IMG/VR virus record: IMGVR_UViG_3300044972_002389
Span: 62,001 to 126,000 of that record
Strand: one strand, 5' to 3'
DNA: 64,000 nucleotides
A program made the translations under genes and the position numbers. Below are positions 13,889 through 41,955 of this stretch, piece after piece. The notes under the pieces were generated by a model. That model was given only the letters and a program-made list of their open reading frames with translations, was not told where the DNA came from and did no database searches. The first letter of the stretch is position 1. Each line of letters begins with the position of its first letter.

Positions 13889-14168
13889 GGCTGCACTCAA
13901 AGCAAGGATACATTTTTATAGATCTTTGACTCAAAGATCTAAATGGATTGTAATGTTTTTTTTGGAGATTTTAGGTACAGCCAGCATACTGCTGGCTGTC
14001 GCCGTTTAAGCCTTTCAAATATTACCTTTGAGCACATTGTATTTGTTTTGGTTGTTTGGCAGTGTAGCCTTGACCATCAGCAGTATTTTGCGTAAGAATC
14101 TATTACTCGCTGTAATGATGTTGTTTTATACAGGGTTGAATTTATATGGATTATGGAGTTTTGGATGA
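13878..14168 (+). pseudogene. Small membrane-protein gene with an in-frame TAA
   Basis: GTG 13878 frame gives hydrophobic FFLEILGTASILLAVAV, TAA at 14007-14009, then AFQILPLSTLYLFWLFGS...LYGLWSFG to TGA 14166-14168, which overlaps the polymerase ATG as ATGA. Confidence 0.65.
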
Positions 14169-18988: not shown

Positions 18989-19014
18989 TGGGCACCCCAC
19001 AGTGCCCATTTTTT
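18989..19014 (+). terminator. Rho-independent terminator
   Basis: TGGGCAC-CCCACA-GTGCCCA followed by TTTTTT. Confidence 0.75.
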
Positions 19015-19025
19015 GGAGACTGCTT

Positions 19026-19556
19026 GTGCCAGTTGAACACGAACGCAAAATGCTCCTGCGACCTGAAAGCCCGCAGGAGCTACTACGACATTTGAAACGC
19101 CAACCCCTTGTGCAAACCTTTGAAATAACACAGGGTTATATCAACAAAAGTGCAAGAATTCGACATGTGGTACCACACAATGGTGATGCAGAAACGCATT
19201 GGTTCACTTTCAAAACCAAGGTTACTGGAAATACAGTGGAGATCGAAACAGAAATTTCAATCCACGACTATCACAAACTTTTCTTGATAGCTAAACCCGT
19301 AATCCACAAAACTCGCTGCAAGTTTCAAGAAGGGTTGAACTGTTGGGACGTGGATTTTTTCAAAAATCCCAAAAGCGGCGACATTTATTTGAGCATGGCA
19401 GAAGTGGAAATGCCAGAATTTGAGTTAGACCTTCCTGAGGTTCATCCTCTCTTACAGGAGAATTTTTGGCGCTGGATTGACGCAAACGACAAGAGGTTTC
19501 AGAACAAGAATCTTAGTAACTATAAAAAAGTTTTGATGAACCTGAAAGGTCTATAA
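19026..19556 (+). CDS. CYTH-domain protein (adenylate cyclase/triphosphatase-like)
   Basis: EHERK, ITQGY, ARIR, EIETEI, IHKTR, WDVDFF, MAEVE; GTG start after ggag SD. Confidence 0.85.
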   Translation: MPVEHERKMLLRPESPQELLRHLKRQPLVQTFEITQGYINKSARIRHVVPHNGDAETHWFTFKTKVTGNTVEIETEISIHDYHKLFLIAKPVIHKTRCKFQEGLNCWDVDFFKNPKSGDIYLSMAEVEMPEFELDLPEVHPLLQENFWRWIDANDKRFQNKNLSNYKKVLMNLKGL

Positions 19557-20344
19557 TGCCAAACAGCAAATATCGTAGCATCTTCATAAGCGATACGCAT
19601 CTTGGTAGTCGTGCATGCCAAGCTGAGCTACTTGTGGAGTTTTTGAAACACAACTCCTGCCAAAATCTATACCTCGTTGGTGACATATTTGATTTGTGGA
19701 AATTGAAAAGCAGCAAATTCTGGCCACAAACACATAGCAATGTGGTTCGAAGAATTCTCACTGCGGCCAAGAGAGGCACACAGGTGAGATATGTTTTAGG
19801 TAATCATGATGAGTACCTTCGAGCATGGATTCCAGACATACACACTTTTGGCAACATTGAGCTGGGCAATGCCTTTGAACATCACTCTGTTCATGGGCAG
19901 AGATTTTTGGTAACACACGGTGATTTGTTTGACGGTGTAATTCGATATCACAAATGGCTTAGCTTGATGGGCGACAAAGCACACAGTTTTTTACTGTGGT
20001 TGAACACACATTTGAATCATATGCGCCGGTTTTTTGGAAAAGATTATTGGAGTCTAAGTTCATACCTTAAAACAAACACGAAACAAGCTGTTGCATTTAT
20101 CACCAAATACGAGCAACATGTAGTACAATATGCTCGGGACGAAGCATTTCATGGAGTAATTTGTGGCCATATTCATTCTCCATCGTTGAAAACGTTTGAG
20201 GATGGGTTTGTGTATATGAATTGTGGTGATTTTTGTGAAACTGTGTCAGCTTTGGTTGAAAACTTTGATGGCTCAATAGAGCTACTGGTTTACGACACTG
20301 AAACAAAAAGTATGATGACGAAAAACACATGGAGCCTTGAATGA
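19556..20344 (+). CDS. LpxH-like metallophosphoesterase, resembling the PlcP phospholipase C clade
   Basis: YRSIFISDTHLG.R.CQAE, LYLVGDIFD.W, GNHDE, HGD.FD, ICGHIH, YMNCGDFCE; directly upstream of an Agt-like GT4. Confidence 0.85.
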   Translation: MPNSKYRSIFISDTHLGSRACQAELLVEFLKHNSCQNLYLVGDIFDLWKLKSSKFWPQTHSNVVRRILTAAKRGTQVRYVLGNHDEYLRAWIPDIHTFGNIELGNAFEHHSVHGQRFLVTHGDLFDGVIRYHKWLSLMGDKAHSFLLWLNTHLNHMRRFFGKDYWSLSSYLKTNTKQAVAFITKYEQHVVQYARDEAFHGVICGHIHSPSLKTFEDGFVYMNCGDFCETVSALVENFDGSIELLVYDTETKSMMTKNTWSLE

Positions 20345-21333
20345 GACTTGTGATTGTTGATGACAACTGCCAAGACCAAGTGAATGGTGTTGTAACTACA
20401 ATGAATGCAGTGAAAAAACAAATGTTTTCTCGAGGCATACAGAATCTCATTCACATCACTCCTGATCAAATGATGTCTATGCCTGCATTGGTATATCCAG
20501 GTGCTCGCATACCATTGAATTTTTGGAATTTGAAAAAAAGAATAGAGGCGTATGAACCCACACACTTGCACATTTGTACAGAAGGTGTGCTGGGCTTAAC
20601 TGCTAGGCAATTTTTTCAAAACAAAAATTGGCGCTACACAACTAGCTTTCACACAAGATGGGATCACTATCTCAAGGAAAAATTTGGTGTGCCGGCCCTC
20701 AAAACCATGAGGTATCTCAAATGGTTTCATCAAAATAGTGCAGCAACTTTGGTCAACACTCCTACTATGCAAAGAGAGATGGTGTCGCTTGGCCTGTCTC
20801 AAGCCATCACATGGTCACGGGGAGTCAACACCCAACTGTTTCAATTTAATGACCGCAAGTGTGACACCAAGCCCACATTGTTGAGTGTTGGTCGAATCAG
20901 TGCTGAGAAAAATTTAGAGGTGTTTTGTAGCCTATCAGCAGAAAAATACAATCTAGTGTGTGTTGGTGATGGCCCTGATCTCAAGCGGTTACAGAACAAA
21001 TACCCCTGGGTGACATTTACTGGGCAATTGAGCGGTAAGCAACTGGTACAGCAGTTCCAAAATGCTGACTGCTTTGTTTTCACCAGCAAAAGTGACACGT
21101 TTGGGTTGGTTATGATTGAAAGCATGAGTGTTGGTACTCCTGTTGCAGCATTTCCTGTGCAGGGTCCAATAGATGTTGTAGATGATGGGGTGACTGGTGT
21201 GCTAAATGAGGATATTCAGACAGCTATCTCGCAATGTTTGACATTGAGTCGAAAAACTGTTTTTGAAGGCAGCAAGCGATGGAGTTGGGAAAAAACAACT
21301 GATATCTTTGTTGATACGCTGGTACCCAAATGA
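20341..21333 (+). CDS. GT4 glycosyltransferase, resembling Agt glycolipid synthases
   Basis: QVNGVVTT, HICTEG.LG, TTSFHTR, SRGV, VGRISAEKNL, VGDGP, DTFGLVMIESM..GTPVAAFP. Confidence 0.88.
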   Translation: MRLVIVDDNCQDQVNGVVTTMNAVKKQMFSRGIQNLIHITPDQMMSMPALVYPGARIPLNFWNLKKRIEAYEPTHLHICTEGVLGLTARQFFQNKNWRYTTSFHTRWDHYLKEKFGVPALKTMRYLKWFHQNSAATLVNTPTMQREMVSLGLSQAITWSRGVNTQLFQFNDRKCDTKPTLLSVGRISAEKNLEVFCSLSAEKYNLVCVGDGPDLKRLQNKYPWVTFTGQLSGKQLVQQFQNADCFVFTSKSDTFGLVMIESMSVGTPVAAFPVQGPIDVVDDGVTGVLNEDIQTAISQCLTLSRKTVFEGSKRWSWEKTTDIFVDTLVPK

Positions 21334-21557
21334 AACATAAAAAAACCATTCCATCAAATTTTCCCACTCTCAAATGTGTTGCATGCGGCACAAGCTGTGA
21401 GCCTTACAGGAAATACGTTTGTGACAATGATGGGGCAGTAGTCCATACTCAAAGTGACATTTGGCCAGAATATTTCCGTGACATGGGGACCACCCGTATT
21501 GAGTTTTGTAGTGCACAATGTGGCCTCAAATATTGCACAGTAAATCAATTGGTGTAG
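21330..21557 (+). CDS. Small Cys-rich (zinc-binding-like) protein
   Basis: CVAC near the N-terminus and EFCSAQC near the C-terminus. Confidence 0.55.
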   Translation: MKHKKTIPSNFPTLKCVACGTSCEPYRKYVCDNDGAVVHTQSDIWPEYFRDMGTTRIEFCSAQCGLKYCTVNQLV

Positions 21558-21613: not shown

Positions 21614-21985
21614 ATGACAGAACCAACTACAAGAAAAATCTACGTGACTTTTCAACGTGAAGGGATTCACAAGTATCCAGCAGCTGGAACTGACCCCTCC
21701 CTTGCAGATGTAAATTTTCTTCAATATCCGCATAGGCACATGTTTCATTTCAAGGTTGGAATTGGCGTCAATCACCTAGACCGAGACATTGAATTTATCA
21801 TTTTCAAGCGTTGGCTGGAAAGTCTCTATGGTGATGGTGTGATCCAACTGGATTTCAAAAGCTGCGAGATGATCGCCGAAGACCTCTACGCCCAAATCTC
21901 TGCTCGCTATCCAGGTCGTGCAGTGAGCATTGACGTTAGTGAAGATGGTGAGAATGGGGCTGTGCTAGCCTGGGACGCTGCATAA
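21614..21985 (+). CDS. T-fold QueD paralogue with LxxxHRHxF signature (DpdL-like)
   Basis: FLQYPHRHMFHF, DRDIEFI, SCEMIA and VSEDGENGA; lacks the canonical QueD C-x3-HGH motif; two genes upstream of dpdA. Confidence 0.8.
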   Translation: MTEPTTRKIYVTFQREGIHKYPAAGTDPSLADVNFLQYPHRHMFHFKVGIGVNHLDRDIEFIIFKRWLESLYGDGVIQLDFKSCEMIAEDLYAQISARYPGRAVSIDVSEDGENGAVLAWDAA

Positions 21986-22000
21986 CCACCAAGGATTGCT

Positions 22001-22062
22001 ATACAAAGTATTTGAGCGCCAGGAGATCGAGATAGGATTGTGCTGGCTCAAATACTTTGTAT
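22001..22062. repeat. Perfect 17-bp inverted repeat with a 28-nt spacer
   Basis: ATACAAAGTATTTGAGC (22001-17) and GCTCAAATACTTTGTAT (22046-62). Confidence 0.9.
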
Positions 22063-22155
22063 TGGCGATAACCTTATAATTTTCAATGCTATAATTGTCA
22101 AAAACTCCTGTGGTTTATATACTATCTCTATTAGAGAATATTTGAAGGATCAAAA

Positions 22156-23244
22156 ATGCCCAATGTATTTGTATGGCCTATCGAGCCATTGGATAATCGC
22201 TACACCCAACAATGGTATCACGAGATTCCGTTGCGGCTCCAAGAAATAGTTGGAAATGCAGCAAAAGTAATCCAACTTGATGGGGTCCAAAACACTACAA
22301 GCACCACATCTGGTGCATTTTTGAATTTCAGCGACACCAACAGATGGAAAAGCACTCAACTGGTTGAGTTTCTCAACAAACATGATGCTGGAGAAACAAC
22401 TCCAAATGATGTGCATTTGTTCACTGACGCTTGGAATCCAGTGATTCTGCAAGTCAAGTATATGAATGATCTCATGGGATATAATTGGAACATACAAGGT
22501 TACTGGCATGCTGGAGCATACGATCCCACTGATATCCTTGGATATAAAATGAGCAAACCGTGGCCCTGGCTAGCTGAGCAGGCACTGTTTCATGCCTGCG
22601 ATGAGAATTGGTATGCAACAGATTTTCATAAAAAAATGTTTTTGAGCAATCTGGGCATCAGCAATGAATATCATCACAAAGCCAAAACTAGTGGGCAACC
22701 ACACTCTGCTATTGTCAAACAAATGCAAGATATTATGCAGGACAGCCGAGAGAGGAAACAGGGCGTTATTTGGCCACACCGTTACAATCCAGATAAGCAG
22801 CCTGAAATTGCTGAAGATCTCTCCAACAGCATGAAACAGCCTTGGTGTATTACACAAAAAATGAATCTCAACAAAAGCAGTTATTACGAAAAGCTGGCTG
22901 ACTGCCAAGTAATTTTTTCCTGTAGCTTGCATGAAAACTTGGGCATCAGTGTAATGGAAGCTGTGCTGGCAGATGTGATCCCAGTGCTGCCCAATCGGTG
23001 CAGCTACAGCGAAATGTATCATCCTGATTTTCTCTATCCCAGCAACTGGACTCAAGATTGGGAAAGTTATCAAACACACAAACAACAATTGACTGAATTT
23101 ATTCAGTACAGATTGAATCACCCCAAAAAGTTCAGTAGGCAGTTGGAAAAGCAAAAGAAAGTGCTCTTACAAAAATATCTTTCAGCTAGCGTAATGTTTG
23201 AAAACATCAGCAACACAGTTGCTAGATCAACCACAGTAAAGTAA
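22156..23244 (+). CDS. GT-B fold glycosyltransferase within the deazaguanine cluster
   Basis: LFTDAWNP, YWHAGAYDP, WPHRY.PDKQPE and SLHENLGISVMEA (E-x7-E) with PVLP...SY.EM. Confidence 0.8.
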   Translation: MPNVFVWPIEPLDNRYTQQWYHEIPLRLQEIVGNAAKVIQLDGVQNTTSTTSGAFLNFSDTNRWKSTQLVEFLNKHDAGETTPNDVHLFTDAWNPVILQVKYMNDLMGYNWNIQGYWHAGAYDPTDILGYKMSKPWPWLAEQALFHACDENWYATDFHKKMFLSNLGISNEYHHKAKTSGQPHSAIVKQMQDIMQDSRERKQGVIWPHRYNPDKQPEIAEDLSNSMKQPWCITQKMNLNKSSYYEKLADCQVIFSCSLHENLGISVMEAVLADVIPVLPNRCSYSEMYHPDFLYPSNWTQDWESYQTHKQQLTEFIQYRLNHPKKFSRQLEKQKKVLLQKYLSASVMFENISNTVARSTTVK

Positions 23245-23253
23245 GATATATCT

Positions 23254-24912
23254 ATGACAAAACTTTCCAGCCCCAACCCACATTTGAAAAAAATTGATCA
23301 AAACATGCAACCTGTGGTGGGTAGAGACATGTGGACCACCAACAAGGACTATGCTATTTTTCTTCCTTCAATCTCAGCGATCTATGTGCGACTAGTAAGT
23401 CAGCCCAACGCTCGCACAGTCAAGGGGCTGCCGGGTGGATTGCAGGATTTGGACTTTCTGCAAACCAATACCAACTTATTTTATTATCCCACTGCACTCT
23501 ACAGCAGCGGTCACAGTTATTGGGATCCTGCTCAAAGTGATATCCAAGAAGCTATGGTGCAAAAGCGAGACAAAAACGCCTCAGTAATTGTGGGCGACAG
23601 TGGTGGTTATCAGATTGCTACTGGCGTTCTCAAATGGCCTTGGCAGAAAAAAGAAAAGCAAACTGATCAAGACTGGATGAAGGACAAAGACGCCATTAGG
23701 ATGAAAATCCTACGCTGGCTTGAACACACTTGTGACTACAGTATGGTATTAGATGTCCCCACAGGCAGCTTGTTGAAGTTTGGTAACGATCCCATCACAG
23801 GTGAGAACCTACATCCTGGGGTTAAGAACTTTAGAGACTGTCTTGAAAGCAGTATGGAGAATCACAACTTTTTCATCAAAAATCGTCGGGAAGGTAGTAC
23901 ACAATTTTTGAATGTGTTGCAGGGGCGCAATCAAGAAGAAGGTGACATTTGGTGGGACGTTGTGAAAGATCTTCCTTTTGAAACCTGGGCATTCAGTAAT
24001 GTGCAAGCCAGCAACTTTGCTATAAATCTCCGTCGGATCATTATCATGCGAGATGGCAAGTATTTGGATAACAGAGATTGGATCCATTATCTAGGCAATG
24101 GCAAAATCAAGGCAGGCTGCGCTCTTACTACACTTCAACGAGTGTGGAGAAAGCACATCAACGAGCGTACAACTCTCAGTTACGATGCAGCAAGTCCTTT
24201 TGTGAACGTAGCAAAAGGCAACATCTACTACAGTTGGGAAGTAAGTCCGCAAAGCATTGCATATAAAAACAACTCGTTGCCAGACAAAAAAGAGCTTAAG
24301 GGCAGTCAAGAACTGTTTCAAGACTGGATCAATCGCCACAATCAAAAACATGCTGTTCGCGAAAGCAGCATTGGCAAGCGGATCACCATTGGTGATATCT
24401 GTGTCAAAGGTTATGAAGATCTCAATTTCAAAAAACAAGCTTTTTCACAAAAAGAGTTTGAAAGCTTGTTGTATCAACAAAGCTTGGAAGGCGTTCATGG
24501 CGAGAAGTTTCGCTACAGTGATGAATACAAACATTATCTTATGCATGAGCACACTGACCACGGCAGCGGCATGTTTGATTGGGGCAAGAAAGAGTTTAAG
24601 GACCATGAAAAGTATCAGGTCAAATGGCCCAGCAGCATGGATGGTCTCAGCTATGTGCTGGGCATGAGCCACAATGTTGAGCTTCATATTGAAGCTATTC
24701 AACATGCATGTGCAATGCAAGACCTGCCAATGGAGGAGAGGAAACATCACATCAGCGAAGACTTGATTGAATTTGCTGGGGGACTTTGTGAAGAGATCTT
24801 CACTAGTGAAAAACCCATGCAACTGATTGAAAAACATTCTGCTATGTTAGCCAAAATCACAGGAATGAACGCTGATAACAACATTGTCATGGATTTTGAT
24901 GAATTTGAATAG
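23254..24912 (+). CDS. dpdA: DpdA-like DNA base-exchange transglycosylase (TGT fold)
   Basis: TGT motifs IVGDSGGYQI, MVLDVP, NVLQG, IHYLG, SYDAASPF; next to folE and a T-fold gene. Confidence 0.8.
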   Translation: MTKLSSPNPHLKKIDQNMQPVVGRDMWTTNKDYAIFLPSISAIYVRLVSQPNARTVKGLPGGLQDLDFLQTNTNLFYYPTALYSSGHSYWDPAQSDIQEAMVQKRDKNASVIVGDSGGYQIATGVLKWPWQKKEKQTDQDWMKDKDAIRMKILRWLEHTCDYSMVLDVPTGSLLKFGNDPITGENLHPGVKNFRDCLESSMENHNFFIKNRREGSTQFLNVLQGRNQEEGDIWWDVVKDLPFETWAFSNVQASNFAINLRRIIIMRDGKYLDNRDWIHYLGNGKIKAGCALTTLQRVWRKHINERTTLSYDAASPFVNVAKGNIYYSWEVSPQSIAYKNNSLPDKKELKGSQELFQDWINRHNQKHAVRESSIGKRITIGDICVKGYEDLNFKKQAFSQKEFESLLYQQSLEGVHGEKFRYSDEYKHYLMHEHTDHGSGMFDWGKKEFKDHEKYQVKWPSSMDGLSYVLGMSHNVELHIEAIQHACAMQDLPMEERKHHISEDLIEFAGGLCEEIFTSEKPMQLIEKHSAMLAKITGMNADNNIVMDFDEFE

Positions 24913-24932
24913 CAATAACACAATTTTTGTGT

Positions 24933-24940
24933 TATAAATA
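24933..24940 (+). promoter_or_regulatory. T4-type late promoter TATAAATA upstream of folE
   Basis: Exact consensus, followed by a 75-nt structured leader. Confidence 0.7.
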
Positions 24941-25015
24941 GTCTGCTACATTACGGTAGCAAATTGGTGGAAACACCCGTTGTGCATAAACGACAGATGC
25001 TTTGAAAGGAAAGAT

Positions 25016-25696
25016 ATGAGCTATAATCGCACAAAATGTGATCCTGAACTGGGTCGCAAAGTACATGAATACCTAGTTTCCAAAGGGGTTGAAACCCCAA
25101 CAGTGGAAAATTCCCTAAGCCGCACAGACAAAATTGATATTATTGAACGCAAGTTCAAGGACATCATGGAAACAATGGGCTTGAATCTATCAGATGATAG
25201 TTTGGCTGAAACGCCGACACGAGTGGCTCGCATGTTTATCCAGGAACTTTTTTGGGGTCTTGATTGGGAAGCTTTCCCCAAGTGCACCACTGTTGCCAAC
25301 AAAATGGGCTATGATGAAATGGTGTGTGAACGAAATGTCACTGTCAAAAGTGCCTGCGAACATCACTTCATTGTGATTGATGGTGTAGCAACTGTGGCTT
25401 ATATTCCCAAAGAAAAGGTATTGGGCCTAAGCAAGATCAATCGAATTGTCGAATACTTTAGCCGCCGACCACAAATTCAAGAGCGTTTGACTGAGCAGAT
25501 CTTTCATGCAATGGAATATATCCTGGAAACCGATAGCATTGCTGTCGTCATTCACGGCAAGCACTATTGCGTAAGTCATCGTGGCGTTGAAGATGATTGC
25601 AGCAGCACAGTTACCAGCAAGCTGGGTGGTGCGTTCAAACAGGATCCCAGTGCTCGTGCTGAATTTATGAAGATGGTTGACTTGACCTCTCTCTAA
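25016..25696 (+). CDS. folE: GTP cyclohydrolase I
   Basis: LAETPTRVARMF, VKSACEHHF, GLSKINRIVEYFSRRPQIQERLT, HYCVSHRGV, RAEF; aaggaaag SD. Confidence 0.95.
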   Translation: MSYNRTKCDPELGRKVHEYLVSKGVETPTVENSLSRTDKIDIIERKFKDIMETMGLNLSDDSLAETPTRVARMFIQELFWGLDWEAFPKCTTVANKMGYDEMVCERNVTVKSACEHHFIVIDGVATVAYIPKEKVLGLSKINRIVEYFSRRPQIQERLTEQIFHAMEYILETDSIAVVIHGKHYCVSHRGVEDDCSSTVTSKLGGAFKQDPSARAEFMKMVDLTSL

Positions 25697-25735
25697 TACA
25701 ACAGTTATTGTAACAGAGAATTTTTAGGTCAAAAT

Positions 25736-26020
25736 ATGAAAATCATCAACAGTAGATATAGAGAGTGGAATGTGTTGCCCGAGAGTGTTCGGGCAATACT
25801 CATTCACAATCAATTACTCCTTAGCTTCGAAGAGCTTTACAAGCCATCCAACCAACGTTATGAACCCAGTTATGAACTGTTGTTCAATTGGTGTGTGGAA
25901 AATTGCACCAATATTTGGTCCACAGAAAAAATCAGCTATGAGAGTTTTCGGTTCAGTTTTTGGGCTGTGGAAGATCAAGCTCGTTTTATAGAGTTTTTGC
26001 AATCGCCCAGAGGTTCCTGA
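25736..26020 (+). CDS. Small hypothetical protein, probably of the 'F..E.D...F' family
   Basis: LFNWCVENC...FSFWAVEDQARFIEFL. Confidence 0.55.
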   Translation: MKIINSRYREWNVLPESVRAILIHNQLLLSFEELYKPSNQRYEPSYELLFNWCVENCTNIWSTEKISYESFRFSFWAVEDQARFIEFLQSPRGS

Positions 26021-26475
26021 TGGCCTCTAATATTTTTAAGGTAACCAGTGTCTGTCAAGGCAGTGTAACCGGTATCACAGTGAATAACCTTGGATCAGGT
26101 TACACGGTTGGTACGTTACTGACATTTGGTAGCAGTAATGCCAGGCCTACTCAAGCATTGCGAGTTGACAATGACTATGGCGAAACCATCTTAAGCATCA
26201 GCATACAAGGTGAGGTCACTTGGCATCAAAACCATCCCACTAAGGCAGCATCTAAGTTGGTAGACAGTTTGCAGAACTGCATTGACATAAAAGCCGCTGG
26301 GGAAGTAGCTATAGCAAGAAGTTATCTACAAGGGGTTAAAAAGTGTTTGAGGATAGCTAAACAAGTTTCCCATGAGGACCTGATTAGGCCATTGGAAACA
26401 GAAGTTGAGCATAGAGAAGGGAAACTCACTTGGCAGGCGTTAAACAACAGTTTGGAGAATCAAAATGACACATGA
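26020..26475 (+). CDS. Hypothetical protein
   Basis: ATG overlaps the previous stop as TGATG; the N-terminal VTGITVNNLGSGYT resembles a repeat motif of phage structural proteins. Confidence 0.6.
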   Translation: MASNIFKVTSVCQGSVTGITVNNLGSGYTVGTLLTFGSSNARPTQALRVDNDYGETILSISIQGEVTWHQNHPTKAASKLVDSLQNCIDIKAAGEVAIARSYLQGVKKCLRIAKQVSHEDLIRPLETEVEHREGKLTWQALNNSLENQNDT

Positions 26476-27046
26476 AACCAGTAAAGCTGTTATGAGAAGG
26501 CTCTCTGACAGCAGATTTATTACTCGATATTTCGTAGGCAATGGCATTGACATTGGTGCTGGGGATGACCCAGTCAGCAATTACAAAGATTTTTTTCCAG
26601 GAATGCAGCAGGTGAGAAATTGGGACCTACCTGATGGTGATGCGCAGTTGATGGCAGGTGTAGCTGACAACAGTTTTGATTGGTTACTCAGCAGCCATTG
26701 TCTTGAGCACATGAGAGACCCTACAGAAGCTATGAGAAACTGGAGCAGAATTTTGCAACCAGGTGGGCATATGGTCCTATTGGTTCCAGATGAAGACCTT
26801 TATGAACAAGGGGTTTTTCCCAGTCGTTTCAACTGGGATCACAAAACTACTTGGACAATTCAAAAAAATCTCAGCTGGAGTCCTGTTTCTGTAAGCTGCA
26901 CAAGTTTCCTAGCCAACTTTCCCGAACTCACTATCTTGAAGCTTGAGCTTTTGGATGCCAGTTATCGATACCATATTCAAAATCAAGATCAAACACTGAC
27001 ACCCATTGGTGAATCAGCTATCGAAATCATTCTTAGGAAAAAGTGA
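26465..27046 (+). CDS. Class I SAM-dependent methyltransferase
   Basis: GNGIDIGAGDDP (motif I), WDLPDGDAQ, SFDWLLSSHCLEHM, ILQPGGH. Confidence 0.88.
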   Translation: MTHETSKAVMRRLSDSRFITRYFVGNGIDIGAGDDPVSNYKDFFPGMQQVRNWDLPDGDAQLMAGVADNSFDWLLSSHCLEHMRDPTEAMRNWSRILQPGGHMVLLVPDEDLYEQGVFPSRFNWDHKTTWTIQKNLSWSPVSVSCTSFLANFPELTILKLELLDASYRYHIQNQDQTLTPIGESAIEIILRKK

Positions 27047-27091
27047 CAATCTTGCACGACTCTGGTATAGTTTTGAAATAGTTTTCTTGGG

Positions 27092-27889
27092 TTGATTGTG
27101 CTGAAAAACTTCATAACCTATGCCACTGCTGGTGATATAATATACAGTCTTTGTGCAGTAAAAATCCTTGGGGGTGGCAACATTTACCTCAAATTGGGAT
27201 ACCTTGATGAGTTTTGCCGAAATGTGTTGGGTTGGTACAATCAGCCCTTCACAGGCAGAATAAGTGAAAAAGATTTTCAAAACATTGAAAGCCTGTTGTT
27301 ACACCAAAGTTATTTGCATGAAGTGCAAATCTATACCAACCAGCACATTGATTATGATTTAGCAGCTGAAAATTGGAAATTCATATTACCTTCTGGTTGG
27401 CAAGGTAATCAAACTCAAGCCTATGCCTTGGGACTGGGATGGGATATGACTGACGTTCAATTGCAGCACCAGTTGTTGAGAGAGCCTTGGCTCACACAGG
27501 TTAGCCCAATCCTTATCCCCAATCGACCCATAGTAATCAATCGAACACCTAGACATAGAGACAACAGTGCTACACAAAAATGGATGGATTTTATCAAACA
27601 AGGTCTGTGCAAGCAGGCTGTGTTTGTGGGCACACCTAGAGAACATCAAGAGTGGCAAACAGAGTTCAAGGAGACTATTGACTATTTTCCTACCCTAGAT
27701 CTGTTGCATTTGGCACAGGTAATTCAAGGTTGTGAAATGTTCATTGGCAATCAAAGTGCGCCATTGGCTATAGCGATAGGTTTGGGCAAAAGCTATTGGT
27801 GCGAAGGCAATCGGGATACAAAAACACAAACTCCTCTAGGAGGCGGGGGCGATTGTTGGTTTGACCGCATAAATGGAAATTATTTTTGA
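27092..27889 (+). CDS. GT9 (heptosyltransferase)-like glycosyltransferase
   Basis: AGDIIYSL at the N-terminus and LLHLAQVIQGCEMFIGNQSAP.AIA.GLGK at the C-terminus. Confidence 0.7.
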   Translation: MIVLKNFITYATAGDIIYSLCAVKILGGGNIYLKLGYLDEFCRNVLGWYNQPFTGRISEKDFQNIESLLLHQSYLHEVQIYTNQHIDYDLAAENWKFILPSGWQGNQTQAYALGLGWDMTDVQLQHQLLREPWLTQVSPILIPNRPIVINRTPRHRDNSATQKWMDFIKQGLCKQAVFVGTPREHQEWQTEFKETIDYFPTLDLLHLAQVIQGCEMFIGNQSAPLAIAIGLGKSYWCEGNRDTKTQTPLGGGGDCWFDRINGNYF

Positions 27890-28593
27890 TCGGGCAACAC
27901 ATGTATGGACTGCTGGTTGTTTACAACAACAATTTCTCAGAACTTTCAAAAATAACCTTGGACAAAAACAAAAAGCTGTATGCTCAGAGACACAATTATC
28001 ATCTGTTTGAAAAAACCACTTGGACCAGTCACTTTGACAGAATCCATGCGGTGTTGGAACTTTTTGACACACACCCACATCTCAGTTGGCTTTGGTATAC
28101 TGATACTGATGTTTTGATCACCAACTTCAAAACAACCATACAAGAAAAAACTAGTGACACACATGATTTACTCATCTCAACTGATGTAAATGGCCTCAAT
28201 ACAGGCAGCATTTTATTTCGTAACTCAAGTCAGTGTCGGTCATTACTGCACGAGTTATTGAAAGTGGAAAAAGAAGCTTTGCAACATTGGGACTCAGAAC
28301 AGTGGGCATTGAATCAGTTATTTGGGTTCCCCGGCACACACCACCCAAGTTACCCGCAAGGCGAGTCTTTGAAAATTCCACATCCTTGGGACAAAACGAT
28401 TCAAGTTGTGCCTCAACGAATGTTAAACAGCTATGATTACAACCTATATCCTTATATACCAAAACCTGCCTTGGACAAACTGTTGACAGATGGCTCATGG
28501 CAGCCAGGCGATTGGGCTGTGCATTTTCCTGGTGTAAGTGAATCAGAAAAAATAAATTTGTGCAACAGTTGGCAAAACAAAATACTGTTGTAA
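27886..28593 (+). CDS. GT34/GMA12-like GT-A glycosyltransferase
   Basis: KKLYAQRHNY, WLWYTDTDVLITN (DxD), D.NGLNTGSIL, EQWAL, DWAVHFPG. Confidence 0.75.
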   Translation: MIGQHMYGLLVVYNNNFSELSKITLDKNKKLYAQRHNYHLFEKTTWTSHFDRIHAVLELFDTHPHLSWLWYTDTDVLITNFKTTIQEKTSDTHDLLISTDVNGLNTGSILFRNSSQCRSLLHELLKVEKEALQHWDSEQWALNQLFGFPGTHHPSYPQGESLKIPHPWDKTIQVVPQRMLNSYDYNLYPYIPKPALDKLLTDGSWQPGDWAVHFPGVSESEKINLCNSWQNKILL

Positions 28594-28611
28594 CTGCCAA
28601 AGGACAAAAAA

Positions 28612-29484
28612 TTGAAAGTATATGATTGTTTTACTTTTTTCAATGAGTTAGATCTACTTGAAATACGCCTTGAAGAGCTATGGGACGTTGTTGACTATTT
28701 TGTGTTAGCTGAATCAAATGTTACACATACTGGCATGTTCAAGCCCTTGTATTTTGATCTAAACAAACAACGCTTTGAAAAATATGCCCAGAAAATTCGT
28801 CACATTGTTGTTGATGACATGCCTGGCGGTGAAGACAACCTTTGGTTCAGAGAAAATCATCAACGCAGATGTCTTGCTCGAGGACTAGGAGACAAAAGCC
28901 CTGATGATTTGATCATTGTAACTGATGCCGATGAAATTCCTCGAGCATCAGTAGTTTCTAGCATAAAACATGATAGTCAGCACACTCGTTGGATTTTGTT
29001 TGCTCCACAGTATTTGTATAAATTAAATTACATGAGAATCAAAACCACAAATGGGGTAGATTGGCAAGCTGGTCCAAGTATTATTGTCTCAAAGTCTCAA
29101 GACTTTACTGACCCTCAAACAGAACGAACATTTACGTTTCCATGGGTTGGGTTGCCTGATGGCACAGCCTTTGTTGCGCATGGAGGTTGGCATTGGAGCT
29201 CATTGGGAAACAATCAGCATTGTATTCAAAAGATCAACAGTTTTGTTCATACAAATGAGAATATACCTGAAATAGTCGAAAACTTTGACATTGACAGATT
29301 TATAGCCACAAAAGGTAGCCATCACACCCCAGGACAGTTTTTTGAAACAGTGGAATTGAACAACTATTTTCCCAATTTTGTCTTATCCAATGCACAAAAA
29401 TTCTCGCAACATGTTGCACCTGGGTTAGGTGTCAAAACAAGTGATATCTATCCTTTTGATACCCAACACACTTACAGAACATAA
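28612..29484 (+). CDS. GT17 (beta-1,4-GlcNAc transferase)-like glycosyltransferase
   Basis: VYDCFTFFNELDLLEIRL, VDYFVLAESN.TH.G..KPLYF, ENHQR, VTDADEIP, GGWHWS. Confidence 0.88.
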   Translation: MKVYDCFTFFNELDLLEIRLEELWDVVDYFVLAESNVTHTGMFKPLYFDLNKQRFEKYAQKIRHIVVDDMPGGEDNLWFRENHQRRCLARGLGDKSPDDLIIVTDADEIPRASVVSSIKHDSQHTRWILFAPQYLYKLNYMRIKTTNGVDWQAGPSIIVSKSQDFTDPQTERTFTFPWVGLPDGTAFVAHGGWHWSSLGNNQHCIQKINSFVHTNENIPEIVENFDIDRFIATKGSHHTPGQFFETVELNNYFPNFVLSNAQKFSQHVAPGLGVKTSDIYPFDTQHTYRT

Positions 29485-29500
29485 CAAGGGAGAAATAAAA

Positions 29501-30085
29501 ATGGACATGAGCCTTGAACAAATGCTGGCCCAAACAGGTAAGCGCCAAGCCAGCTTTGAAATAATGATAAATCATCTAAAACAAACTGCCAATCCGTTGA
29601 TTGTTGAAACTGGATGCAGTCGCAGCCTACAACATGGATTCCACGGTGATGGTTTCAGTACAATAATTTTTGACAAGTATGTGGAAACTTTTTCTGGGCA
29701 ACTATTGACAGTTGATTTGGATGAGTCTCATGTGAATTTTTCTCGCTCACAAGTGTGCTCAAACACACAAATTTTTTGTCAAGACAGTGTTGTTTGGTTA
29801 CGAAATTTAAGTCAAAAGTTGCAGGCAGAAAACCGTCAGATAAACTTACTCTATCTCGACAGTTTTGATTTTTACCCAGACAATCCTCATCCCAGTAGTT
29901 TTCATCATATGAAAGAATTGACTGCAATTTGGAGTTGTTTGGGTCCAGGCACAATGATTGCTGTGGACGATAATTTTGGTGACTCTTCTTCTCGGATAGG
30001 CAAAGGCAAGTATGTGGAAGAATTCTTTCAAAACATTTGTGTGCCGCTTGTATATGACGGCTATCAACTAGTTTGGCAGCTTTAA
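29501..30085 (+). CDS. Class I SAM-dependent methyltransferase (Methyltransf_24-like)
   Basis: IVETG, TVDLD, CQDSV..L, LLYLDS, IAVDDN, GKG; aagggag SD. Confidence 0.75.
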   Translation: MDMSLEQMLAQTGKRQASFEIMINHLKQTANPLIVETGCSRSLQHGFHGDGFSTIIFDKYVETFSGQLLTVDLDESHVNFSRSQVCSNTQIFCQDSVVWLRNLSQKLQAENRQINLLYLDSFDFYPDNPHPSSFHHMKELTAIWSCLGPGTMIAVDDNFGDSSSRIGKGKYVEEFFQNICVPLVYDGYQLVWQL

Positions 30086-30147
30086 CACAAGCTCCTTGAC
30101 TTGTCTGCATGGTTACAACAAAATTATAACAAATAGGAGAATCTAGG

Positions 30148-31029
30148 ATGTTTGGACGCAATGAGCTGGTTGGTGAACGTTACTTCAAAAATGCAGAAGA
30201 TGAACTTTTTGTAACTAGTATTTTCACCACATTTCAGGGAGAAGGCCCATATCGAGGCGAGCCTGCTGTGTTTGTTAGGCTAGCCAAGTGCAATCTCCAA
30301 TGTTCATTTTGTGATACTTTCTTTGATGATGGTGATTGGATGACAATCCAAGAGATTGACTCCAAAATCGCAAAGAGCATCTCTGACAGCTTCAATGGTA
30401 ATACCCCTCTTTGGGCTGATGTTGTGTATGGGGGTCCAGGAAGTGATCCTGTAAAGAAACGCAACATGGTTCTCGTGCTTACTGGCGGTGAGCCCATGCT
30501 ACAAAAAAACATTGTTCCATTTTTAGAGCATATGAATACCCAGTTTGCCCGAACGCAAATTGAAAGCAACGGCACTATCGTCCAGAACATTCCTCAGGAA
30601 ACTACCTTAGTAGTAAGTCCCAAGTGCAGTGAAAAAAATGGCCGTCCGGTGAAATATCTTGAACCACGAGCAGAAATGCTAGGAAGAGCAGACTGTTTGA
30701 AATTTGTAATGAGTGCAGATTCTGATACTCCTTACAATAATGTCCCTGACTGGGCACACAACTGGCGGGACCAAACTGGTAAGAAGGTGTTTGTAAGTCC
30801 CATGAACATTTACAACCATGAACCGCAGAAAAGCAAGCAAATTCGAGCTGAGAAAAATCAAATTAGTCTTGAAGAACGCAGTATTGTGGATGAAGTTGTG
30901 AGTTTTTGGACGCCAGGGCTTATCAATATGCAAACTGCTCAAGCCAATCACGAACACGCTGCTCGTTATTGTGTCCAGAACGGATTCGTCTTTAATATGC
31001 AATTGCATTTATTTGGAAGTTACGCCTAA
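30148..31029 (+). CDS. queE: 7-carboxy-7-deazaguanine synthase (radical SAM)
   Basis: IFTTFQGEGPY.G.PAVFVRL, CNLQCSFCDT (CxxxCxxC), LTGGEPMLQ, IESNGT, VSPK, MQLH. Confidence 0.93.
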   Translation: MFGRNELVGERYFKNAEDELFVTSIFTTFQGEGPYRGEPAVFVRLAKCNLQCSFCDTFFDDGDWMTIQEIDSKIAKSISDSFNGNTPLWADVVYGGPGSDPVKKRNMVLVLTGGEPMLQKNIVPFLEHMNTQFARTQIESNGTIVQNIPQETTLVVSPKCSEKNGRPVKYLEPRAEMLGRADCLKFVMSADSDTPYNNVPDWAHNWRDQTGKKVFVSPMNIYNHEPQKSKQIRAEKNQISLEERSIVDEVVSFWTPGLINMQTAQANHEHAARYCVQNGFVFNMQLHLFGSYA

Positions 31030-31298: not shown

Positions 31299-31915
31299 GC
31301 AAGAATCTAAAAATCCCCTTTGGCCTTTGGCCAGGAAGTTGGGGTCTACGAGGTCGCACAAGACAAATTGCAGAAGCCGAATACACTATGCAGGGTCTTG
31401 ACCTTGAGTTACGCTTGATTGAAATAAATGAGGAAGATCCTCTTCAGAAAGAGATCAAAACTCTCAAATCCAAAAAGAAATATGGGCAACTTACTGAGTA
31501 TGAGTTTGACCAGCAAATATGCATGCTGACTACTGAAGAAACCAGTGTTGATCGTGCAATAGCCCTGTTGGATGTTGAACTCAAACACAACAAAATTGAT
31601 CGCAATGAGCATGAGAAGCAAACAGCTGAGGCCAAAAAAGAGCCTTGGGTAGCTATGCCCAACATCAGTTGGGACCCCACTGATCCGTCACGAAGCTTTT
31701 TTGAATTGGATTACAACAGTTATTTTGTGGAATTTCTCCGCAACCACGGTTATGAAGGTGCCAGTGAGCAAGAAGTAGTGGAAAAGTGGTTAACAGATGT
31801 TTGTCGAGCCGTAGCCTCAGATTTGGGCGAACAAGATGATGCATTTGTTGCCACTGCTATACCAACTAACCGGAGAGCAAGGCGACCTAACAAACAGAAG
31901 ACTGAATACAGTTGA
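31295..31915 (+). CDS. Conserved jumbo-phage hypothetical protein
   Basis: IPFGLWPGSWGL.G, KKEPWV, FFELDYN..FVEFL...GY.G..E.E.V.KW. Confidence 0.7.
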   Translation: MSKNLKIPFGLWPGSWGLRGRTRQIAEAEYTMQGLDLELRLIEINEEDPLQKEIKTLKSKKKYGQLTEYEFDQQICMLTTEETSVDRAIALLDVELKHNKIDRNEHEKQTAEAKKEPWVAMPNISWDPTDPSRSFFELDYNSYFVEFLRNHGYEGASEQEVVEKWLTDVCRAVASDLGEQDDAFVATAIPTNRRARRPNKQKTEYS

Positions 31916-31939
31916 CACACTGCCTAGCCTTGCTAGAGT
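31912..31939 (+). promoter_or_regulatory. Sigma70-like promoter TTGACA-N16-TAGAGT
   Basis: Upstream of ggag SD and the TTG start at 31965. Confidence 0.6.
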
Positions 31940-31964
31940 TGTGTCATATAGTGGAGATAGAACT

Positions 31965-32945
31965 TTGAGCACTTATGTAATTGTAGATCTGCAAAATTTG
32001 GCGATGCGTGTTCGATATGGTGTAAGAGCTCCAGATTTCAATGCACAAGTGGGCTTGGCCATGCACATTATTTTCACCAGCATCAAAAAGGTGTGGAACG
32101 ATTTCAATGGGTCACATTTAGTGTGCTGCCTCGAAAGCAGGAGTTGGCGACGGGATTTTTACCAGCCTTACAAAGCTCATCGCCGAGTAGCTGCTGGACA
32201 GCGCACAGCGGATGAACAGGAAGAAGATCGAGTGTTTTATGAAGCTCTTGATGACTTCATTAAGTTCGTAAGCTCGCGTACCAATGCAACAGTGTTGAAG
32301 GCGCCACAAGCTGAAGCAGATGATCTCATTGCACGTTGGATCCAATTGCATCCGGGTGATGATCATGTGATTGTCAGCACTGACAGTGACTTTCAACAAC
32401 TGCTAGCCACGAATGTTAAAATTTACGATGGTATCAGTGCGTTGCTCTATACCATAAACGGAATTTACGACAAAGATGGCAATCTTGCGCACAACAAGAA
32501 GGGCGAGGCACTACCAGTGCCTCATCCTGAATGGATTTTGTTTGAAAAATGCATTAGGGGTGATGCCAGTGATAATGTCATGAGTGCATTCCCAGGTGTG
32601 CGGAAGAAAAAGATGTTGGAAGCATTTGAAAACAAAGTGTCCCAAGGCTATTCCTGGAACAATCTCATGCTCAGCACGTGGACAGACCACAACGGAGAAG
32701 AGATTCGAGTTCGTGACGCATATGAAAGAAACTGTACTCTTGTTGATCTCACCGCTCAGCCTCAAGAGTTTGTGGAAACTTGGGATACTTGCATCAAAAA
32801 TGCAGTAAACCAACCCCGTAAGGCACAAGTGGGCATTGCATTGCTGAAATTTGCAGCACAGTGGGGTTTGATGCGGATTGAAAAAACAGCCTCAGATTAC
32901 AGTGTGTGTTTCAGTAGTGAATATCAAGGACACTTGACCGAGTAA
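31965..32945 (+). CDS. rnh: T4 RNase H-like 5'-3' exonuclease (FEN fold)
   Basis: IVD..N, SWRRDFYQPYKAHR, EADDLIA, IVSTDSDF.QL, GDASDNV. Confidence 0.9.
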   Translation: MSTYVIVDLQNLAMRVRYGVRAPDFNAQVGLAMHIIFTSIKKVWNDFNGSHLVCCLESRSWRRDFYQPYKAHRRVAAGQRTADEQEEDRVFYEALDDFIKFVSSRTNATVLKAPQAEADDLIARWIQLHPGDDHVIVSTDSDFQQLLATNVKIYDGISALLYTINGIYDKDGNLAHNKKGEALPVPHPEWILFEKCIRGDASDNVMSAFPGVRKKKMLEAFENKVSQGYSWNNLMLSTWTDHNGEEIRVRDAYERNCTLVDLTAQPQEFVETWDTCIKNAVNQPRKAQVGIALLKFAAQWGLMRIEKTASDYSVCFSSEYQGHLTE

Positions 32946-41833: not shown

Positions 41834-41955
41834 TCTAGTTCCTCGAAGCTTCAAGATATTATAAGGCAAATTGACTATTTTTGCCAAAATTTAAGATTCA
41901 TCTGCCTATAATAGACTAAAAAGCTGTTGAGAACTTGACCAACACTTGTAGGTAG

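Follow-up and report, generated by a model that had tools for sequence, protein, structure and literature searches.

A predicted GT4-family glycosyltransferase linked to a 7-deazaguanine DNA-modification cluster in jumbo phages

A DpdL-type gene cluster containing a glycosyltransferase

We examined a 64,000-nucleotide stretch of IMG/VR virus record IMGVR_UViG_3300044972_002389 (positions 62,001 to 126,000; hereinafter designated the window), which belongs to a genome of at least 328 kb and is a distant relative of Pseudomonas jumbo phage PA5oct. The + strand of the window between 21614 and 31029 encodes a set of 7-deazaguanine DNA-modification genes together with a glycosyltransferase (GT), flanked and interrupted by lineage-specific genes:

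19002..21557 (+), upstream lineage-specific genes: a CYTH-domain protein (19002-19556), a metallophosphoesterase (19556-20344), a second and clear GT4 glycosyltransferase (20341-21333) and a small zinc-finger ORF (21330-21557)
21614..21985 (+), DpdL-type T-fold protein (QueD-like, proposed 7-carboxy-7-deazaguanine decarboxylase), 123 aa
22156..23244 (+), predicted GT4-family glycosyltransferase (GT-B fold, retaining-type), 362 aa
23254..24912 (+), divergent, predicted TGT-fold transglycosylase (DpdA-like), 552 aa
24980..25696 (+), FolE, GTP cyclohydrolase I; the ENA gene call starts at an ATG at 25016
25736..30085 (+), lineage-specific block: two small unknown ORFs (25736-26020 and 25960-26475), a SAM methyltransferase (26465-27046), an unknown 265-aa protein (27092-27889), a GT34-like GT-A (27886-28593), a GT17-like glycosyltransferase (28612-29484) and a weak Methyltransf_24 protein (29429-30085)
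30148..31029 (+), QueE, radical-SAM 7-carboxy-7-deazaguanine synthase

The 123-aa protein contains LQYPHRHMF, which fits the LxxxHRHxF motif defined for DpdL (Hutinet/Cui et al. 2023; PMC10516641), and matches phrog_17812 (E=4e-35). It is 54% identical to ACP17 gp125 and 37% to phiST CGPG_00067, the two proteins named DpdL in that paper, as well as 55% to PA5oct gp166 and 66% to the Phosso protein. It scores E=1e-63 against a DpdL HMM, although that HMM included the window's own sequence. FolE is assigned by Pfam PF01227 (E=2e-60) and is 59% identical to ACP17 FolE. QueE is 43% identical to ACP17 QueE (E=2e-71), and its top five NCBIfam hits are all QueE models (E 2e-21 to 7e-14). The genes of the two lineage-specific blocks were assigned by Pfam. 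The block between folE and queE is present only in the window's close relatives (10-15 of 80 loci), and the upstream genes, whose membership of the module is uncertain, are found in 15 of 80 related loci.

Neither QueD nor QueC is found in the window. HMMs built from phage QueD and QueC give best E-values of 0.29 and 0.71 over all six frames, tblastn finds nothing, and Pfam scans of the roughly 50 larger ORFs show no PTPS, QueC or QueF. The original prediction, which reported the T-fold, GT-B, DpdA, folE and queE genes in this interval and no queD, queC or queF in the window, therefore holds as an observation. It had looked for a CxxxHGH signature in QueD, whereas phage QueD normally carries CxxxHGY; the HMM covers both types, so the absence stands. 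The absence of queD nevertheless carries little weight, as the window covers under 20% of the genome, QueD lies about 53 kb from the triplet in PA5oct and about 220 kb from DpdL-GT in Phosso, and most bacterial hosts have their own queD.

Predicted structures of the glycosyltransferase and the DpdA-like protein

The 362-aa protein gives only a weak Pfam Glycos_transf_1 hit (E=0.006), while 30 of 32 family members hit this Pfam model. Its AF2 model (pLDDT 88.5) matches GT4 GT-B enzymes, with BshA, MshA, glycogen synthase, WaaG and PglA as the top Foldseek PDB hits (E 6e-9 to 1e-6), and the top BFVD hit is ACP17 gp124 (TM 0.84-0.89). E260-x7-E268, R209 and K214, corresponding to the GT catalytic apparatus, are invariant across 32 homologues that are 51-88% identical to the window's protein. 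The nearest structural neighbours glycosylate small molecules or glycans rather than DNA, and T4 beta-GT is not among the top 50 hits. The GT family is acidic (median pI 5.8), which is not the profile we would expect of a DNA-binding enzyme (T4 beta-GT is basic), although the co-encoded DpdA is equally acidic.

The 552-aa protein has no Pfam, PHROG or NCBIfam hit. Its AF2 model (pLDDT 91) shows a TGT fold with a helical C-terminal extension of about 200 aa, and its top five Foldseek PDB hits are TGT 6z0d, QTRT1 6h62, DpdA 7ui4 and QTRT1/2 9hn7 (E 5e-6 to 9e-4). It carries GDSGGYQ, comparable to the TGT DSGGFQ motif; D115-S116-G-G118-x-Q120, D167, G224 and D311 are invariant. An hhalign comparison with the ACP17-type DpdA family gives E=1.4e-4 with these motifs in register, and the protein is 30% identical to PA5oct gp168. 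Fold alone cannot tell a DNA target from a tRNA target for this enzyme.

The glycosyltransferase is linked to DpdL, DpdA, FolE and QueE

To examine whether the GT is a passenger, we surveyed its family and genomic neighbourhood, conservation of the dpdL-GT-dpdA triplet having been proposed beforehand as a test. The family is almost confined to phages: we found at least 611 homologous protein clusters, none named beyond 'hypothetical protein' in the sources shown, 177 IMG/VR contigs, and a single hit in 185,579 cellular species genomes, which is a MAG contig with FolE-DpdA-DpdL-GT. The DpdA family is of nearly equal size (605 clusters). In 36 non-redundant loci (GTs under 90% identical, at least 6 kb on both sides), DpdA lies within 10 kb of the GT in 36/36, DpdL in 35/36, FolE in 35/36, QueE in 31/36, QueD in 13/36 and QueC in 0/36, with median gaps under 1 kb. 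Gene order varies between loci (DpdL-GT-DpdA, DpdA-DpdL-GT, DpdL-DpdA-GT, DpdA-GT), so this is more than inherited synteny, and the triplet passes the conservation test strongly.

The same linkage occurs in cultured phages from different groups, namely ACP17 (gp123-124-125), PA5oct (gp168-167-166), X1 (GT-DpdA-DpdL-QueE), BCSR5 and Phosso. In Phosso, DpdL and GT stay adjacent although DpdA is about 170 kb away. In addition, 30 of 48 non-redundant loci carry sugar-nucleotide genes within 10 kb, often between DpdL/DpdA and the GT, including a nucleotidyltransferase+cupin protein, PMM, UDP-sugar dehydrogenase, epimerase/dehydratase and a DegT aminotransferase, and these are distributed by GT clade. 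Pfam scans, which covered only some of the gene families, found no thymidylate-synthase-like enzyme or clear 5-methylpyrimidine dioxygenase that would supply a hydroxylated pyrimidine as a rival acceptor; one family gave a sub-threshold 2OG-Fe(II) oxygenase hit.

A model for glycosylated 7-deazaguanine in phage DNA

We interpret the region as a DpdL-type 7-deazaguanine DNA-modification module of a PA5oct-like jumbo phage with a dedicated GT4 glycosyltransferase as an integral component. Following the published scheme, FolE would convert GTP to H2NTP, a QueD encoded elsewhere in the genome or supplied by the host would make CPH4, QueE would make 7-carboxy-7-deazaguanine (CDG), DpdL would remove the carboxyl group to give 7-deazaguanine (DG), and the 552-aa TGT-fold enzyme would exchange guanine in phage DNA for this base. 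In the additional step that we propose, the GT4 enzyme transfers a sugar from a nucleotide-sugar to the deazaguanine, most likely on DNA after insertion, or alternatively on the free base before insertion by the unusually large DpdA. The result would be a glycosylated 7-deazaguanine that shields DNA from host nucleases, and the extra glycosyltransferases and methyltransferases between folE and queE may elaborate or methylate the sugar in this lineage. Our analysis establishes the gene identities, predicted folds, catalytic motifs and the tight, order-independent and almost phage-exclusive linkage of the GT to dpdL, dpdA, folE and queE, whereas the pathway, the acceptor atom, the sugar and its presence in virion DNA are inferred, in the absence of chemical data for any GT-bearing phage. 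A literature search found no paper describing a glycosylated deazaguanine; the DNA of these phages may hold a sugar-decorated purine not previously described.

We hold this reading with moderate confidence, as several observations weigh against it. Unsubstituted 7-deazaguanine has no hydroxyl handle, so the sugar would need a C- or N-glycosidic link or an unknown substituent, and retaining GT4 enzymes are not known to do this. Phage phiST, the only DpdL phage whose DNA has been measured, reaches full dDG replacement without a GT. The DpdL of the GT-less phage RHph_I1_18 is 62% identical to the window's DpdL, closer than that of PA5oct, implying that DpdL chemistry probably does not differ between GT+ and GT– phages. 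On the other hand, PA5oct DNA, from a phage with the homologous triplet, has a modified, restriction-resistant G of unknown chemistry, for which we found no chemical analysis of the base (PMC12191111), and co-expression of ACP17 DpdL and DpdA without the GT gave no dDG, leading the authors to suggest that other enzymes may be needed.

The interpretation in the original prediction is thus partly supported: its gene identifications, its DpdL motif and its central inference that the GT is coupled to the dpdL/dpdA module hold, whereas its option that the T-fold protein stands in for QueD is not supported.

Alternative readings

A less likely possibility is that the GT takes part in making the base but leaves no sugar in DNA, for example through transient glycosylation or activation of CDG/DG, or of a pterin intermediate, that assists DpdL or DpdA, the final base being plain dDG or dCDG. 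GT and DpdL are the most persistently adjacent pair, with ORFs that often overlap and an adjacency retained in Phosso; the closest structural neighbours, BshA and MshA, act on small molecules; the GT is acidic; and ACP17 DpdL and DpdA alone gave no dDG. However, phiST makes dDG with no GT homologue in the fetched locus or by tblastn, and phiST DpdL and DpdA also failed in E. coli, so the ACP17 failure is not specific to GT+ phages. Dedicated and diversified sugar-nucleotide pathways would also be costly for a transient group, and such diversity is what we would expect of arms-race surface chemistry.

It is similarly unlikely that the GT works on virion proteins, host envelope glycans or another DNA base and sits beside the dpd genes only through shared ancestry. 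The window does carry other glycan-related genes (the GT4 at 20341, the GT34 and GT17 proteins, a GT at 42618-43526 next to a tail fibre, and a carbamoyltransferase), and most loci come from one broad group of related jumbo phages in which DNA polymerase, a gene family designated f4 and the cluster are syntenic. Nevertheless, the linkage survives extensive reshuffling of gene order and holds in cultured phages of very different genome size and type, including ACP17 (156 kb, with T4-like gene annotations), X1 (200 kb), PA5oct (287 kb) and Phosso (469 kb). In the 36 well-flanked loci the family was never found away from a DpdA, and no hydroxylated pyrimidine acceptor is in view among the families scanned nearby.

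The reading in the original prediction that the T-fold protein acts as the QueD of this phage, so that CDG or a CDG derivative is inserted and the GT sugars the carboxyl-derived substituent, is doubtful. It draws on the lack of QueD in the window and on the fact that DpdL decarboxylase activity has never been demonstrated. However, the protein has Leu in place of the Cys that QueD activity is stated to need (PMC10516641), and relatives encode a QueD as well as a DpdL, namely ACP17, PA5oct (two QueD-type paralogues), Phosso and, within 10 kb, 13 of the 36 metagenomic loci.

Least likely is that the TGT-like enzyme and the GT modify tRNA, giving a glycosylated deazaguanosine analogous to eukaryotic mannosyl- or galactosyl-queuosine: although tRNA TGT and QTRT1 score equally with DpdA among the top structural hits and a GT4-family enzyme (QTMAN/GTDC1) mannosylates queuosine in tRNA, PA5oct shows a restriction-resistant G in its DNA, no DUF3524 domain is present, no tRNA genes are in the window, and the cluster sits among DNA replication genes (DNA polymerase and a 5'-3' exonuclease).

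Comparison with related systems

In phage DNA glycosylation of pyrimidines (T4 alpha/beta-glucosyl-5hmC, 5hmC glycans made by metavirome GTs, and arabinosyl-5-hydroxycytosine of RB69/DLP3), a phage-encoded glycosyltransferase likewise clusters with base-modification genes, some systems have further GTs that build longer glycans, and phage-encoded sugar-nucleotide synthesis is seen. Those systems act on a hydroxyl of a modified pyrimidine made by a ThyA homologue or by MT plus a TET-like oxygenase, neither of which was found here among the gene families scanned; the partner here is a purine (deazaguanine) pathway, and the GT is GT4-like rather than like T4 beta-GT. In animal tRNA queuosine glycosylation (QTMAN/GTDC1, a GT4 enzyme, and QTGAL), a GT4-type enzyme adds a hexose to a 7-deazaguanine derivative already in a nucleic acid, but the acceptor is the cyclopentenediol hydroxyl of queuosine, to which this cluster has no route (no QueC, QueF, QueA or QueG).

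The dDG system of Cellulophaga phage phiST (FolE, QueD, QueE, DpdL and DpdA3; Cui/Hutinet et al., NAR 2023) shares FolE, QueE, a DpdL with the LxxxHRHxF motif, a TGT-superfamily transglycosylase and the absence of QueC, and presumably the purpose of replacing G in DNA to evade restriction. It differs in the lack of a detected GT homologue, in having QueD in the cluster, and in its transglycosylase, the 259-aa DpdA3, which shows no detectable profile similarity to the 552-aa protein. The clusters of Acidovorax phage ACP17 (gp119-gp126) and PA5oct (gp162-gp168) both have homologues of DpdL and of the GT (31-35% identity), the latter lying between DpdA and DpdL in both. PA5oct has a homologue of the 552-aa DpdA and ACP17 a related DpdA type. 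Gene order differs from that of the window, PA5oct keeps FolE and QueD about 53 kb away, and neither phage has the GT34, GT17 and methyltransferase block. The GT was not discussed in the 2023 deazaguanine paper, whose main text has no occurrence of 'glycosyl', and it is annotated as hypothetical in the ACP17 and PA5oct RefSeq records.

The phage region and its genes

The window has about 42–48% G+C and encodes a family-B DNA polymerase (14153–16921) and a 5'-3' exonuclease (31836–32945), which are 42–47% and 44% identical, respectively, to those of Pseudomonas jumbo phage PA5oct. Megablast of the region against 50,697 phage records found no match, and only protein-level relatives exist. Contigs carrying a 100%-identical glycosyltransferase (GT) protein occur in IMG/VR, up to 328,603 bp long, and an ENA metagenome scaffold encodes the identical DpdA-like protein, so the window represents under a fifth of an uncultured jumbo-phage genome. 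No tRNA genes occur in the window. In a promoter and terminator scan of 18–33 kb, promoter-like sites were not above shuffled expectation and terminator-like sites were only slightly above it.

The original prediction described a T-fold gene, a GT-B glycosyltransferase, a 552-aa TGT-fold DpdA, folE and queE, and this observation is confirmed, as all five genes are present on the + strand:

21614–21985 (+), DpdL-type T-fold protein (QueD-like, proposed CDG decarboxylase), 123 aa
22156–23244 (+), divergent GT4-type glycosyltransferase with a predicted GT-B fold, 362 aa
23254–24912 (+), DpdA-like protein with a predicted TGT fold, 552 aa
24980–25696 (+), FolE
30148–31029 (+), QueE

The T-fold protein contains LQYPHRHMF at residues 37–45, consistent with the LxxxHRHxF signature that replaces the QueD CxxxHG[HY] motif in the 2023 NAR paper defining DpdL (PMC10516641). 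It is 54% identical (E=5e-36) to ACP17 gp125 and 37% identical (E=8e-11) to phiST CGPG_00067, the two DpdL proteins used in that paper. FolE is supported by a Pfam hit at E=2e-60, while QueE is 43% identical to ACP17 QueE and has QueE models as its top NCBIfam hits.

DpdA-like, FolE and QueE genes are adjacent, and no QueD, QueC or QueF is detectable in the window by HMM, tblastn or Pfam. The original prediction had looked for a CxxxHGH motif, which alone would not have found a phage QueD, because the phage QueDs of phiST, BcepGomr, ACP17 and RHph_I1_18 carry CxxxHGY; the HMM search covers both types. Two IMG/VR scans for QueD, one with a QueD alignment and one with the QueD of a contig from the same sample, did not include the contigs of this phage among the best 80 of more than 395–600 hits, and DNA alignment of candidate QueD genes gave no usable link. 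QueC, which together with QueF, Gat-QueC or ArcS marks preQ0/archaeosine-type phage deazaguanine systems, is missing not only from the window but also from the 10 kb around the GT in 36 of 36 related loci, although the QueC HMM was built from one sequence and its sensitivity is limited.

Predicted structures of the glycosyltransferase and the DpdA-like protein

PDB sequence and profile searches with the GT and the 552-aa protein gave nothing, and structure prediction was needed to identify them. The GT hits Pfam Glycos_transf_1 below the gathering threshold (16.6 bits against a cut-off of 26.4), whereas 30 of 32 homologues hit the model at E<=1, with a best E of 3e-6, indicating a divergent member of the family. 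An AlphaFold2 model built on 32 homologues (pLDDT 88.5) adopts a two-Rossmann-domain GT-B fold with 140 PDB hits at E<=0.001, the best of which are the GT4 enzymes BshA, MshA, glycogen synthase, WaaG and PglA (E 6e-9 to 1e-6). E260-x7-E268, R209 and K214 are invariant in the family; in GT4 enzymes, the E-x7-E motif and the Arg/Lys pair that binds the donor diphosphate are the catalytic and donor-binding motifs. T4 beta-GT is not among the top 50 structural hits, and no ThyA-like gene was found in the window or in the related-locus families scanned, so the protein does not resemble the T4-type DNA glucosyltransferases in these respects. Nor does it resemble the tRNA-queuosine mannosyltransferase QTMAN/GTDC1, in which an N-terminal DUF3524 domain is fused to a GT4 C-domain, since no DUF3524 hit was obtained in any of 32 family members at E<=1. 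The pI of the GT was uninformative as an indicator of DNA binding, as both the GT and the DpdA-like protein are acidic.

The model of the 552-aa protein (pLDDT 91) has bacterial TGT, QTRT1 and the DNA preQ0 insertase DpdA (7ui4) as its five best Foldseek PDB hits (prob 1.00, E 5e-6 to 9e-4), albeit with modest TM-scores of 0.41–0.45 on the target. G114-D-S-G-G-Y-Q120, D167 and D311 (in SYDAASP) are invariant across 34 homologues and align with DSGGLQ, FD and SYDS of ACP17-type DpdA (hhalign E=1.4e-4); D115 and D311 would correspond to TGT D102 and D280, the catalytic Asp of the DSGGxQ motif and the nucleophile, respectively. By contrast, the protein has no hit in Pfam (including PF01702 TGT), PHROGs, NCBIfam or PDB sequences. 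Membership of DpdA3 is ruled out by the absence of similarity to phiST DpdA3, no similarity to BcepGomr DpdA was detected either, and the only sequence-profile link is the weak one to ACP17-type DpdA. The protein is therefore best treated as a separate, unnamed DpdA-like subfamily. That it acts on DNA rather than tRNA is inferred, with indirect support only: PA5oct, which has a 30%-identical homologue, has restriction-resistant G in its DNA. This DpdA type can occur without DpdL or the GT, as Vibrio phage 2.275.O._10N.286.54.E11 encodes a partial homologue (330312–331688; 32% identity over 65% of the query) but does not appear in the DpdL or GT tblastn hit lists.

Linkage of the glycosyltransferase to the deazaguanine module

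To determine whether the GT is part of the pathway, as the original prediction had proposed to test by conservation, we examined the distribution and neighbourhood of its family, and the outcome is strongly positive. The GT family has at least 611 protein clusters, none named beyond 'hypothetical protein' in the sources consulted, and the 552-aa family has 605. IMG/VR holds 177 contigs with a GT homologue, whereas a scan of one genome for each of 185,579 bacterial and archaeal species found a single hit, a MAG contig reading FolE-DpdA-DpdL-GT with a QueD about 5 kb away. The family is thus essentially confined to phages.

We then searched the 80 fetched loci with HMMs for each pathway protein. 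After collapsing GTs that are 90% or more identical and requiring at least 6 kb on both sides, 36 loci remain, all of which have a DpdA (the 552-aa type or the ACP17 type); DpdL is present in 35, FolE in 35, QueE in 31, QueD in 13 and QueC in none. Median GT-to-partner gaps are 220–860 bp. Gene order is not fixed, in that DpdL-GT-DpdA, DpdA-DpdL-GT, DpdL-DpdA-GT and DpdA-GT all occur with varied insertions, a pattern that inherited synteny alone would not give.

The same linkage is seen in the cultured phages ACP17 (gp123 DpdA, gp124 GT, gp125 DpdL, gp126 QueE), PA5oct (gp168, gp167, gp166), Xanthomonas phage X1 (GT-DpdA-DpdL-QueE), BCSR5 and Sinorhizobium phage Phosso, in the last of which DpdL and GT remain adjacent although DpdA is about 170 kb away. 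In the X1 cluster, a PAPS-reductase-family (PP-loop) protein (70090–70623) sits between FolE and the GT; it does not match a QueC HMM and may carry out a different amidation or activation step. PA5oct (169206–171971) encodes three T-fold paralogues, namely gp230 (CxxxHGH QueD type, next to FolE gp231), gp226 (CxxxHGY, the usual phage QueD type) and gp166 (DpdL), and a related locus, L070, shows the same pair of QueD types. Not every DpdL phage has the GT, as no GT homologue was found by tblastn in the phiST group, RHph_I1_18 or several others. The GT therefore looks like an add-on to the DpdL pathway in one large set of phages.

Sugar-nucleotide and accessory genes near the glycosyltransferase

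We clustered all ORFs within 10 kb of the GT and scanned the commoner families with Pfam. Sugar-nucleotide genes appear repeatedly: a cytidylyltransferase-like domain fused to a mannose-6-P-isomerase-type cupin (18 of 48 non-redundant loci, typically between DpdA and GT), phosphomannomutase, UDP-glucose/GDP-mannose dehydrogenase, NAD-dependent epimerase/dehydratase and a DegT-type aminotransferase. Thirty of 48 loci have at least one such gene or an extra GT, and their distribution by clade on a GT tree fits diversification of the donor sugar. Other recurrent neighbours fit a deazaguanine economy, including a type-I phosphoribosyltransferase (25 of 48 non-redundant loci), a YhhQ/Vut_1 transporter family protein and SAM synthetase (in related loci, for example L023:11409–11909, L053:15120–15731 and L034:14670–15770); the phosphoribosyltransferase could plausibly salvage the guanine released by DpdA.

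No thymidylate-synthase homologue or clear 5-methylpyrimidine (TET-type) dioxygenase was found in the window or among the neighbourhood families scanned, which are only some of the gene families, and one of these gave a sub-threshold 2OG-Fe(II) oxygenase hit. The acceptors used by all known DNA glycosylation systems are therefore not evident, and on the basis of the families scanned we rejected pyrimidine glycosylation as the role of the GT.

In the lineage of this phage, the interval between folE and queE holds two methyltransferases, a GT34-like and a GT17-like glycosyltransferase, and unknown ORFs. For two of the latter, 25960–26475 and 27092–27889, NCBIfam gave no hit and PDB sequence searches gave only chance-level ones (E >= 0.3). 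Immediately upstream of dpdL (19002–21333, +) lie a CYTH-domain protein, a metallophosphoesterase and a clear GT4 glycosyltransferase, which are conserved only in close relatives, 15 of 80 loci. The folE–queE interval genes are likewise restricted to close relatives, and both sets are only possible members of the pathway.

A proposed pathway to a glycosylated 7-deazaguanine

The steps up to DNA insertion follow the published scheme. FolE would act first, followed by a QueD encoded elsewhere in the genome or supplied by the host; QueE would then make CDG, DpdL would make 7-deazaguanine, an activity unproven even for the founding members, and the TGT-fold enzyme would exchange G in DNA. The added step would be sugar transfer by the GT4 enzyme. 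We consider transfer to the base in DNA most likely, by analogy with other phage DNA glycosyltransferases, although transfer to the free base followed by insertion by the unusually large DpdA is a real alternative. The difficulty is chemical: 7-deazaguanine has no hydroxyl, so a C- or N-glycoside, or an unrecognized substituent, would be needed, and DpdL of the GT-less RHph_I1_18 is 62% identical to the DpdL studied here, arguing that DpdL does the same reaction with or without the GT. The presence of the genes and the conserved, phage-specific association of the GT with a DpdL-type deazaguanine module rest on the searches and models described here, whereas decarboxylation, base exchange in DNA and sugar transfer are inferred by homology or analogy and the product remains a prediction. 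The interpretation first offered is supported in part, its core, the coupling of the GT to the module, being strengthened.

Published experiments bear on this scheme in part. Among DpdL phages, only phiST DNA has been analysed in the literature we found, and it shows complete dDG replacement in a phage with no GT. Co-expression of DpdL and DpdA of ACP17 or phiST in E. coli gave no dDG. PA5oct DNA resists five restriction enzymes with G in their sites and is restricted by sensors of modified G, and we found no mass spectrometry reported for it. Searches of about 8.4 million papers and preprints found no report of a glycosylated deazaguanine in DNA, and none of a GT in dpd clusters.

Among the alternatives, a transient, biosynthetic role for the GT with plain dDG as the end product is favoured by the tight GT-DpdL pairing and by the small-molecule GT4 structural neighbours, but phiST, which manages without a GT, and the diversified sugar pathways count against it. 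An unrelated target, such as virion or envelope glycans, is disfavoured by the order-independent linkage across cultured phages of very different genome size. The option raised in the original prediction, that the T-fold protein acts as QueD, is countered by the Cys-to-Leu change and by relatives that have both genes. The PA5oct DNA data count against tRNA as the target.

On a more speculative reading, which we hold only tentatively, these phages, including cultured PA5oct, ACP17 and Phosso, would carry the first glycosylated purine known in any DNA, with the sugar attached to 7-deazaguanine through what would necessarily be new chemistry: a C-glycoside at C7 or C8, or an N-glycoside. The sugar would differ between phage clades (mannose or heptose type, amino or uronic sugars), and in the lineage of this phage it would be extended and methylated by three further glycosyltransferases and two methyltransferases.

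In the literature we surveyed, natural DNA glycosylation is reported only on modified pyrimidines. Described examples are 5hmC, 5hmU (base J) and 5hoC, and deazaguanine DNA modifications are known only with small 7-substituents. A sugar-bearing deazaguanine would join these two lines of phage counter-defence, would require a glycosyltransferase with unprecedented acceptor chemistry, and would name the unidentified modified G of the therapeutic-candidate phage PA5oct. The hypothesis is directly testable, because cultured phages carry the same genes and 7-deaza-dGTP is commercially available. As the family is large, with hundreds of environmental jumbo-phage contigs, the base could be common in nature, and it also bears on sequencing and restriction behaviour, on type IV, END and glycosylase defences, and on enzymatic DNA-labelling tools.

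Other genes in the window

Outside the deazaguanine module, the window encodes the following genes:

375–1451, UvdE UV-endonuclease
1495–1875, S-adenosylmethionine decarboxylase
1844–2485, serine recombinase/resolvase with HTH
3380–4153 (–), SIR2-family protein
4833–8561 (+), 1242-aa multidomain protein
39204–40901 (–), NodU/CmcH-type carbamoyltransferase
42618–43526 (–), group-1 glycosyltransferase
50948–52210, DUF2201 metallopeptidase/VWA-like protein
52234–53265 (–), NUMOD3 homing-endonuclease-like gene
57375–58262, RlaP-family nucleotidyltransferase

The first four form a run of accessory genes (375–4153). The 1242-aa protein combines several GNAT acetyltransferase domains with a cytidine/dCMP deaminase zinc-binding domain, an unusual fusion. 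The carbamoyltransferase and the group-1 glycosyltransferase lie next to a 2378-aa tail-fibre-like protein with an S74 chaperone domain (39204–50674, –, for the whole set) and may constitute a second glycan-modifying set, possibly for virion proteins.
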